64,000 bases of DNA from Hemiscyllium ocellatum (Eukaryota), in NCBI RefSeq assembly GCF_020745735.1, contig NC_083424.1, positions 29,684,999-29,748,998 on the forward strand, written 5' to 3'. Position numbers and translations under genes: made by a program. The notes under the pieces are model-generated. The model saw only the letters and a program-made list of their open reading frames with translations, had not been told where the DNA came from and made no database searches. This document shows positions 27,813 to 31,961 of the stretch, piece after piece (the stretch's first letter is position 1; each line of letters opens with the position of its first letter).

Positions 27813-28003
27813 CTCTCCCTGGACCTGGATCTTGAATAACTGTGTGCTTTTGACGATTTTTTGTCTTTCCGTTTTGGTCTATCTTCTCCATTTTCTGTTG
27901 AACTTAATCGCTCCCTCCCTTTGTCATGCTCCTTGTCACTTTGTTGATCAGAAGATTTTTGTTTTTTGCTGGTACTTCTTTCTTTTATTTCGCGTCTTTG
28001 TTC
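27813..28003 (-). CDS. RSRC2: RSRC2 exon 4: EQRREIKERS...DKGRERLSSTENGEDRPKRK...SRSRSRE
   Basis: aaacag|GAA acceptor; DKGRERL.S.ENGEDR matches RSRC2; 191 nt if the GC donor AG|gccagt is used. Confidence 0.9.
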
Positions 28004-30015
28004 CTGTTTTAAGAAGAAGTTGGTTCTTTCAGGAAAATAGTGCAACAAAGAGAGTTAGTATGGGTAGAAAATACAAAGATTTAATAGTGGGTTGTAAAAG
28101 CAACAATTCTTTGAATGTCTTAGAAGAAGTGAAGTAATAAGCTATCAACATTCAGTGCTTTTTACAACACACCAAACCCAAGAAATAGTAATCAAAAAGT
28201 GTACACTGATACACAGTCAAGGGGTGGAATAATCTACTTGCTTTCCAATAATTAGCCATAAATAACTATTCTATAGGCATGAGACTCATCACTCTACATC
28301 ATCTACTGCCAACACAAAGAACCTCTCCAGCTACACTCAAACCAAAATGAACTTATTTGAATCAAAGACCATTTGTCTTACAAAATTTTCAAATGTGAGT
28401 CACTATACACGTATTTTTCATATAATAGGCACACTGCGCTCAATCCAACTTTGTTATTTATCACATTAGTGACTAAATCTATTTGTATGAAAGTTTCAAA
28501 GACTTCAATTTCAATTGCAAGGCACTATTCAGGTCCTTTCAACTCTCAACACAAGGTAAAACCAAAACACCAATCATAATGCAAATTAGTTACACTTTCA
28601 AGATCTGACCCAAACTCAGTGATATGCATATCTTAAAAACTGTACCTTTCCCACAAATGCTCCTTCCTGTGTACAGTTCCTTGCACTTTACAACTTGGGC
28701 AATCTCAGACTATCACCAACTAATTCTAACCAAGTATTTTTAATTTTGCGAGACCAGTACAAGTGGATGTTTGGGTCAAACGACTAATATCAAAATAAAG
28801 CCAAGCTCTTACAGGAAAAGTGAAAAGGGCTAACTGGGATGCATCAAATGATGCAAATACTAGCCAAAAGATAATGATCTTATGACTGAATTCAAGAAGT
28901 TCAACTTTTCCACTTCTAATGGAAACATATCAATCCTATGCAAGATATCCTCCACATTGAGAAAGAATGATTAATCATGGAACAATTCACAGGGAATAAA
29001 CTTGCCTATCTTCTCGGTGATCATGTCTACTAAGCTTTTTCCTTCAATTAAACAAATTCAAACTATGTTGTTAGATGCTTAAATCCACCAGCAATTTAGA
29101 AAATGACTCAAAAGAATGTTGCACATCCAACTTTCATGCAACTATAATGTTTAAAAAGAATGCTGGTGATTAATTTAAACAACTAGTTGCCATAGAATAT
29201 TTTAGAATTCTAAATCATTTTGTGGTAGCCAATAATCACTCTTCCAAAAATATTTCAGTCCGTAATCAAGAAGTCCAAACACCAACTGTCTATGACAGTA
29301 AAAACCTCACCTCAGTGAAGTTATTTAACAAAGTGCTGATACAAATATTTTGTAAAGATTTTGATATGGCCAAATGTAAACATTTTCAATTTCTACACAT
29401 ACATACACAAAATCACAGGCACACTGAACTTTTACGTCAAAAAACCTACCCATTTGGCGCCTGGTTGGTGGTGGAAAGAACATTCACAAGTTATGTGTTA
29501 TGCATTTAAGCATTAAGTCATTGGAACATGCAAAGGTACTTATGAACATTTTATTTTTTCCAGACCTCAGCATGTTTTTATTAACTACAATTTTGTTATA
29601 TCTATTAGGTATCAGACCTGAAATCAGATTATAATTACAAGCTGAACTCAGTGCCAGCAATGATACTGCGAAAACATACTGCGGCATTTGAAGCAAGAAT
29701 GCCAGCAAGAGTTTTAATGAGCAAGGGTGAAACAAAGTTAGTACCGGGCTAAAGCCCATCAAAATACTAAATATCCAATAATTAGGACATAATTTACAAA
29801 GCAGCATTTATAAAAGGTTGGTCAGTCCTTTGAATTATGCAAAAATCAAATTGAAATATTTGGACATTATCTTATTCAATGTAGTTTGCAGGGAAGAAAA
29901 CGCCTCCTCTCCAAACCAAATTGAATTGACAATTGACTACCACAAACAAAGCAGATTTGCTGGGTGATTCTTTCAAGTTACAAAGCAAATACGAGTGTGA
30001 ATGGCTGATATTTAC

Positions 30016-30098
30016 CTTTTCAGGAGGTAGGCTTATATTTTTTGCTATTTGACTCTGCAGCGTCTTCTGCTCACTGTGTCTCTTCGTGCATTAGCACG
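30016..30098 (-). other. RSRC2: Candidate alternative poison (PTC) exon of RSRC2, 83 nt
   Basis: tactcag|CGT acceptor, AAG|gtaaat donor, in-frame TAG at 30047-30045, GAAGA enhancer-like motifs; resembles my recollection of the human RSRC2 alternative exon. Confidence 0.7.
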
Positions 30099-30461
30099 CT
30101 GAGTACGATTCATTATAGAAATGTTATCATGTGATCTATGTATACAAAGTAAACTTTCCAAACACAAAAATGCCAAAAATCTGTATTGATACCCTCCTAA
30201 ATTGTAATAACTAAATATTAAAATATTTGGTCAATTTTAACCTATTTAATATACTATTCTAATTAGAACTGGGAAGAAAACATTTATAGTCATCTGCTTA
30301 GGTAGGATACAATACTTTGTCATGACAGCTAAGCAATTTTACTTTTGTCTAACAAACTTTGGTACTTACCATCCTGACTGTCAGTACTCAATAAATAAAT
30401 TGTCAGCAGCACAACATTTAGTTCTTAAATTAATTTATATTCTACAGAAAGTATTAATTAC

Positions 30462-30508
30462 CTCTTTGCTTCTGCTGCGACTTTGCCTGGATCTCCGGCT
30501 TTCACTTT
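30462..30508 (-). CDS. RSRC2: RSRC2 exon 3: ESESRRSRQSRSRSKE
   Basis: ttttccag|AA acceptor, GAG|gtaatt donor; 47 nt; phases fit exons 2 and 4. Confidence 0.9.
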
Positions 30509-31600: not shown

Positions 31601-31961
31601 CAGACTTCCGTTTCTTCTCCCTTGATCTTGATCTCGACCGAGATTGTTTCTTCTCCACAGACCTTGATCTCGACCTGGACCGTTTCTTCTCCACAGATCT
31701 TGACCTTGACCGAGACTGTTTCTTCTCCCTAGATCTTGATCTTGATTGAGACTGTTTTGTGTCCCTGGATCTCGATCTGGTTCGAGACCGTTTCTTCTCC
31801 CTAGATCTTGACCTTGACCGAGATCGAGACCGAGACAGAGATTGGGAAGAACGGTGCTTGTAGCTTTTGGGAGATTTAGACGTTGTCAATCGCTCGCTTT
31901 TCTTTTCTGTGTCTGAAGCAGATTTTTTCAACACCAGCCCATCCTGTTCAGCATCACTTGC
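31601..31961 (-). CDS. RSRC2: RSRC2 exon 2 (ASDAEQDGL... with extra SR decamer repeats)
   Basis: caacag|GCA acceptor, CTG|gtgtgt donor; 361 nt; ASD.E.DGL start and RKS end match RSRC2 exon 2. Confidence 0.9.

Follow-up and report, generated by a model that had tools for sequence, protein, structure and literature searches.

RSRC2 is an arginine/serine-rich, nuclear-speckle protein associated with splicing. Deeply conserved poison exons in SR and SR-like regulators (SRSF3, SRSF5, TRA2B and others) form a well-described class (Lareau & Brenner 2015, PMC4379411), and human RSRC2 has a stop-containing exon of its own. The long human isoform, RSRC2l, consists of RSRC2s with an extra stop-containing exon 4, and RT-PCR gives products of 282 bp and 204 bp for the two forms, a difference of 78 bp (PMC9163560). 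In human cells, overexpression of TRA2A raises RSRC2l in a dose-dependent manner and siTRA2A lowers it (PMC9163560; see also the review PMC10161706). The human isoform that includes the NMD-inducing exon is a standard endogenous target of nonsense-mediated decay (NMD) and accumulates when NMD is inhibited (PMC9108619), as the RSRC2 inclusion isoform also does in a further report (bioRxiv 10.64898/2026.01.12.699048). Later work likewise employs it as such a target. At the level of the gene, RSRC2 is among nine AS-NMD targets common to human, mouse, fly and worm (PMC8652244). Recent work ties RSRC2 to mitotic fidelity (PMC12993456).

Gene assignment and anatomy of the cassette exon

The DNA analysed here (the window) is a 64,000-nucleotide stretch of the Hemiscyllium ocellatum genome. 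Minus-strand open stretches at about 13.2–32 kb of the window encode a protein whose N-terminal part is RS-rich and whose C-terminal part is highly conserved. A 70-residue C-terminal exon matched arginine/serine-rich coiled-coil protein 2 (RSRC2) across vertebrates with 88–96% identity, and the sturgeon RSRC2 protein could be mapped exon by exon onto the window. Judged by exon translations that match RSRC2 proteins, and by blastn matches that are collinear with other vertebrate loci, the gene is RSRC2. In a maximum-likelihood tree of RSRC2 the window sequence fell within the vertebrates but in neither the clade of ray-finned fishes (82/92) nor that of tetrapods (97/90), which is consistent with a cartilaginous fish.

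All features below are on the minus strand, and a slash marks a splice junction. The RS-rich coding exon 2 of RSRC2 occupies 31601..31961. It is followed by a constitutive coding exon of 47 nt (30462..30508), read from the sequence as ..SESRRSRQSRSRSKE and ending in phase 0: it closes on a whole codon (...AGC AAA GAG, S K E), after which comes GTAATT. The next constitutive coding exon (exon 4) has 191 nt (27813..28003) and a GC donor at 27812-27811. In the intron between the exon ending SRSRSKE (30508..30462) and the coding exon that starts at 28003 lies an 83-nt stop-containing cassette exon (30016..30098), delimited by its AG/GT borders and its frame-0 translation. The acceptor, ...ACTCAG/C at 30100-30099/30098, has its AG directly before the exon, and the donor is AAG/GTAAAT at 30016/30015-30014, so that the cassette measures exactly 83 nt. 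The element is single-copy within the 64-kb window.

Because the upstream exon 30508..30462 closes on a complete codon, the cassette is entered in frame 0. When the upstream exon was joined to it in the frame of the gene, the translation read RANARRDTVSRRRCRVK and then a premature TAG at cassette codon 18 (30045..30047), followed after Q K I by a second in-frame stop, TAA (30033..30035). Stops are present in all three frames of the cassette. A preliminary description, made from the letters of the window, had proposed an 83-nt segment with good splice sites at this place, read it in the exon 3 frame to a TAG at 30047-30045 with a second stop four codons later, and pointed to GAAGA motifs. Our reading agreed with it on each of these points: AG and GT border the segment at 30016..30098, the same translation was obtained, the TAA at 30035-30033 stands after Q K I, and GAAGA occurs twice in the cassette.

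From the TAG it is 29 nt to the cassette's 3' end and about 220 nt to the exon 4/5 junction, and more junctions lie beyond. By the NMD rule, a stop triggers decay when it is more than 50–55 nt upstream of a junction between two exons, and the second junction downstream (about 220 nt away) puts the TAG well past this distance. As the cassette's own downstream junction is only 29 nt away, NMD would depend on the junctions farther downstream. By simple arithmetic, a random sequence of 83 nt has a chance of about 0.7 of carrying a stop in any one frame, so the stop alone proves nothing; conservation is the feature that exceeds chance.

Conservation of the cassette and its splice-site flanks

To place the cassette among vertebrates, RSRC2 genomic loci were compared from Polypterus senegalus (bichir), Charadrius vociferus (plover), the Weddell seal and the loach Triplophysa rosa. 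When the entire shark gene was run by blastn against these four loci, the coding exons were found in order, together with one intronic match per species, covering window positions 30173/30138..29982 (85% over 152–192 nt, E = 5e-43 to 9e-53). No other part of the same intron aligned to the four vertebrate loci in this search. The intronic block equals or beats the coding exons, which were 71–95% identical (some exons 70% or lower). An nhmmer profile built from the block recovered its own four source loci (E = 5e-51 to 3e-55); this serves as a positive control and not as independent evidence. The profile had no match in the RSRC2 loci of the tunicate Styela clava or the oyster Pinctada imbricata, a result that at such divergence is uninformative on function, and Rfam gave no match to the block on either strand.

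In a multiple alignment of the five species the conserved block comprises the cassette and the adjoining intron, 45 nt upstream and 28 nt downstream, 156 columns in total. Invariant columns number 118/156 in the block, and the window is 83–87% identical to each other species; for the cassette alone the figures are 60/83 invariant columns and 82–89% identity to the window. Between window and seal, 68/83 exon positions and 129/156 block positions are identical (blastn E = 5e-43), and bird and seal share 149/151 positions in the block. The upstream intron flank with the 3' splice site (30099..30143) has 37/45 invariant columns, and identity falls to 33–48% farther upstream. The downstream flank with the 5' splice site GTAAAT (29988..30015) has 21/28 invariant columns, with 17–43% identity farther downstream. 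The AG acceptor and GT donor are invariant in 5/5 species. The end of the upstream exon, ...AGCAGAAGCAAAGAG/GTAA, is likewise identical in 5/5 species, so the frame in which the cassette is entered is the same in all five. By alignment, these data show very strong purifying selection on the cassette and both of its splice-site flanks.

Exon length and stop position varied between the species. The exon has 83 nt in the window, with the in-frame TAG at codon 18; 82 nt in bichir, with TGA at codon 11; 80 nt in loach, with TGA at codon 15; and 78 nt in both bird and seal, with TGA at codon 8. These length differences correspond to indels of 1, 2 and 4 nt, which together with stops in all frames exclude coding constraint on the cassette. 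An in-frame stop that is kept at a shifting codon indicates constraint at the level of the RNA and not of the protein. A stop retained while its position moves, between splice-site flanks that stay fixed, is on the aligned sequences the mark of a regulated poison exon.

The 78-nt exon of seal and bird is the size of the human RT-PCR difference; the match is one of length and stop, with the seal standing in for the human sequence. From this comparison, the window cassette is almost certainly the orthologue of the mammalian RSRC2 stop exon. The preliminary description had named landmarks of a mammalian exon (CGTGCT...CGAAGAGAC, GAAGACGCTGCAGA and ATAAGCCTAC), and the Weddell seal orthologue, which occupies the same place in the intron, has all of them. 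It had also asked for similarity to other vertebrate RSRC2 introns, which 4/4 loci provided at the E values given above, and had dated AS-NMD control of the gene to before the split of sharks and bony vertebrates. For the element itself that age was supported, since the same intron, frame and in-frame stop occur in the window, two ray-finned fishes and two amniotes. As dated by its distribution, the element predates the split of the window's lineage, the ray-finned fishes and the amniotes, and is no younger than the sampled jawed vertebrates. The link to TRA2 proteins that the same description mentioned agrees with the rise of the human stop-exon isoform under TRA2A and its fall under siTRA2A (PMC9163560).

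Two GAAGA motifs within the cassette are invariant. The first, a candidate Tra2/SR enhancer, lies at 30081..30085 and starts at exon position 14 in 5/5 species; the second, at 30063..30067, starts at exon position 32 (28 in amniotes), also in 5/5 species. The 83-nt cassette holds three GAA triplets, a count not above chance. The two invariant copies are candidate Tra2-type activator sites, a function carried over from the human TRA2A data. Our literature search found no Tra2 CLIP report for the RSRC2 exon, and the Tra2 link consists of human overexpression and knockdown.

RNA structure was predicted with RNAalifold on the five-species alignment; five sequences provide a lead and not evidence. 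A hairpin of the form CUC..CGUGC-UAAU-GCACG..GAG (30080..30103) was predicted in 5/5 species to enclose the AG of the 3' splice site, with this AG in an internal loop. Its inner stem has predicted energies of -7.5 to -7.9 kcal/mol, and its sole change is U-A to U.G in amniotes. The predicted helices fall within 30080-30143 and 29988-30070. Two more helices were likewise predicted in 5/5 species: one of 5 bp in the upstream flank, with two changes compatible with wobble pairing, and one that pairs mid-exon sequence with the intron directly beyond the donor. The latter has one compensatory change, A-U to G-C, in the window's lineage, but also one pair broken in two species. It is a tentative and rather unlikely suggestion of this modelling that what is conserved besides the stop and enhancer motifs reflects a structural switch, in which the hairpin and the long-range helix would gate both splice sites, possibly as a sensor for RSRC2 feedback across jawed vertebrates.

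Further features were observed in and around this intron. The donor after the 191-nt exon is GC in the window (GAGAG/GCCAGT) and in bichir (GAAAG/GCAAGT); bird and seal have GT there. Donors of the GC type are weak and often associated with alternative splicing. About 57 nt of intron before the exon at 28003 (window 28004-28060) are 95% identical to loach over 59 nt, which is above the conservation of that exon, and include an alternative acceptor 22 nt upstream. Coupling of the 83-nt cassette to this acceptor (83 + 22 = 105) was considered and rejected as a conserved feature, as the sums in the other species are not multiples of three and stops remain. A database RSRC2 protein of Heterocephalus glaber (356 aa) has exons 1–3 in a shifted frame and regains the frame via the 22-nt upstream acceptor; this entry has the look of a wrongly annotated alternative transcript. 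Close to its 3' end, the cassette of bird and seal carries an ATG (..TTCATGATAAG), which is missing from that place in the window, in bichir and in loach. Counting 2 + 22 nt, this ATG would share the frame of the next exon when splicing uses the acceptor 22 nt upstream. Such an arrangement points to a possible amniote-specific short protein isoform added to an old poison exon.

A proposed switch on RSRC2 output and rival readings

The anatomy, reading frame, stop and orthology of the cassette are established by the present analysis, and human data were carried over to the orthologous element in order to assign it a mechanism; it is on this footing that we infer NMD sensitivity and TRA2A dependence in this species by analogy. 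Where the cassette is skipped, the SRSRSKE exon would join the next coding exon and full-length RSRC2 would be made. Where it is included, translation would end at the TAG (30047-30045) with at least 6 exon junctions downstream, and the resulting mRNA would be degraded by NMD as in human cells, lowering RSRC2 output. Inclusion in this animal, expected from the orthology, would probably depend on enhancers, with the two GAAGA motifs as candidate Tra2-type activator sites as in human cells. Feedback by RSRC2 itself may complete such a circuit, although our literature search found no demonstration of autoregulation by RSRC2. By analogy with the human exon, the cassette very likely acts as a poison exon in this animal, and we hold with similarly high confidence the joint reading of it as the orthologue of the mammalian 78-nt exon and an NMD switch on RSRC2 output.

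Eighteen sequencing runs were found to contain this stretch, none of them recorded as RNA. The RNA data at hand came from Misgurnus-type loach. Contigs from three runs of one study keep the final ~310 nt of intron ahead of the exon orthologous to the one starting at 28003, and the downstream introns are all spliced (retained segments L008:1-310, L009:1-140 and L010:1-306); the called protein begins at an internal Met (MELSDKG...). The cassette was not present in these three contigs, which were the only non-mammalian RNA contigs compared. They speak weakly for intron retention over inclusion and may represent a detained intron or pre-mRNA. Cassette inclusion was considered as the source of the shortened loach isoforms and rejected, as the three contigs show retention of the intron end and not the cassette. 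A look-up of zebrafish RSRC2 returned the canonical mRNA contig only. A protein search with the exon 2 translation gave no match to truncated inclusion products; RS-rich low-complexity sequence swamped the candidates.

Intron retention of this kind brings to mind decoy exons, on which splice factors assemble and stall the surrounding intron, leaving it detained or retained; the exon is rarely joined, and the outcome is nuclear retention and not NMD. The loach contigs, with about 310 nt of the intron kept in three runs and the downstream introns removed, would fit such a decoy, and the conservation spans both splice-site flanks as in known decoy exons. Like the cassette, decoy exons and detained introns involve a conserved exon-like element with both splice sites in a long intron of an RNA-processing gene. 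Unlike them, the mammalian orthologue of the cassette is genuinely included and degraded by NMD: the human exon is demonstrably joined and its product is NMD-sensitive. A pure decoy would also not need an in-frame stop, but one is kept in every lineage despite the indels, and the loach contigs, being from one study, may simply be pre-mRNA. We therefore regard a decoy role as improbable. The N-terminally shortened RSRC2 isoforms that exist in databases raise a different prospect, that the cassette supplies an alternative start codon or 5' leader for a shortened protein and does not serve mRNA destruction. The bird and seal ATG, in frame via the 22-nt upstream acceptor, and a loach cassette ATG in frame with the normal acceptor lend themselves to this idea, but no such ATG is found in the window or bichir cassette. 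An ATG that is not common to all species cannot explain the conservation of the whole block, and such an mRNA would still carry the upstream open frame ending in the cassette, all of which makes this role very improbable.

Deep conservation by itself names no function, and inclusion of the exon in this species is a prediction from sequence; the block could in principle be conserved for a non-coding role unrelated to splicing, as a transcriptional enhancer, antisense transcript or small RNA, and merely resemble an exon. The edges of conservation, however, coincide with the 3' and 5' splice-site regions, whose AG and GT do not vary; in mammals the orthologue is a real exon; and Rfam is without a match on either strand. 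We regard a role unrelated to splicing as very improbable. A poison exon that switches RSRC2 output through NMD remains our preferred reading, and on that reading the switch would be old, with selection acting on features of the RNA while exon length and stop position drift.

Comparison with described poison exons

The nearest counterpart of the window cassette is human RSRC2 exon 4 from isoform RSRC2l (variant 5); it occupies the same intron (after the SRSRSKE exon) and has the same entry frame and an in-frame stop. The human exon is 78 nt long, whereas the 83 nt of the window exon would shift the frame besides stopping it. The early TGA of the amniotes is missing from the window exon, where translation would run ten codons further to the invariant TAG; missing too is the ATG that amniotes have close to the 3' end. 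Inclusion, NMD sensitivity and response to TRA2A are known for the human RSRC2 exon, in human cells only, where the inclusion isoform is a routine read-out of NMD activity.

No paper stating the depth of conservation of the RSRC2 exon was found in our literature search. This depth may be undocumented, yet it is what a specialist would expect. Formally, ultraconserved elements are stretches of at least 200 nt that are 100% identical in human, mouse and rat; the RSRC2 block, at about 156 nt, is shorter. The SRSF5 event has been traced across animals, whereas the RSRC2 block has no detectable similarity in the tunicate or oyster RSRC2 loci.

In its general design, the RSRC2 cassette is like the ultraconserved poison exons of SR genes: it is a stop-containing cassette in an RS-domain gene, it is conserved into the intron on either side, to a degree that matches or surpasses the coding exons, and it carries enhancer-like purine motifs, with a homeostatic logic that is presumed. 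This adds no new principle, deep conservation being the established pattern for poison exons of RS-domain genes. With it, RSRC2 would join the list of deeply conserved poison exons, and its invariant positions offer a short list for mutation.
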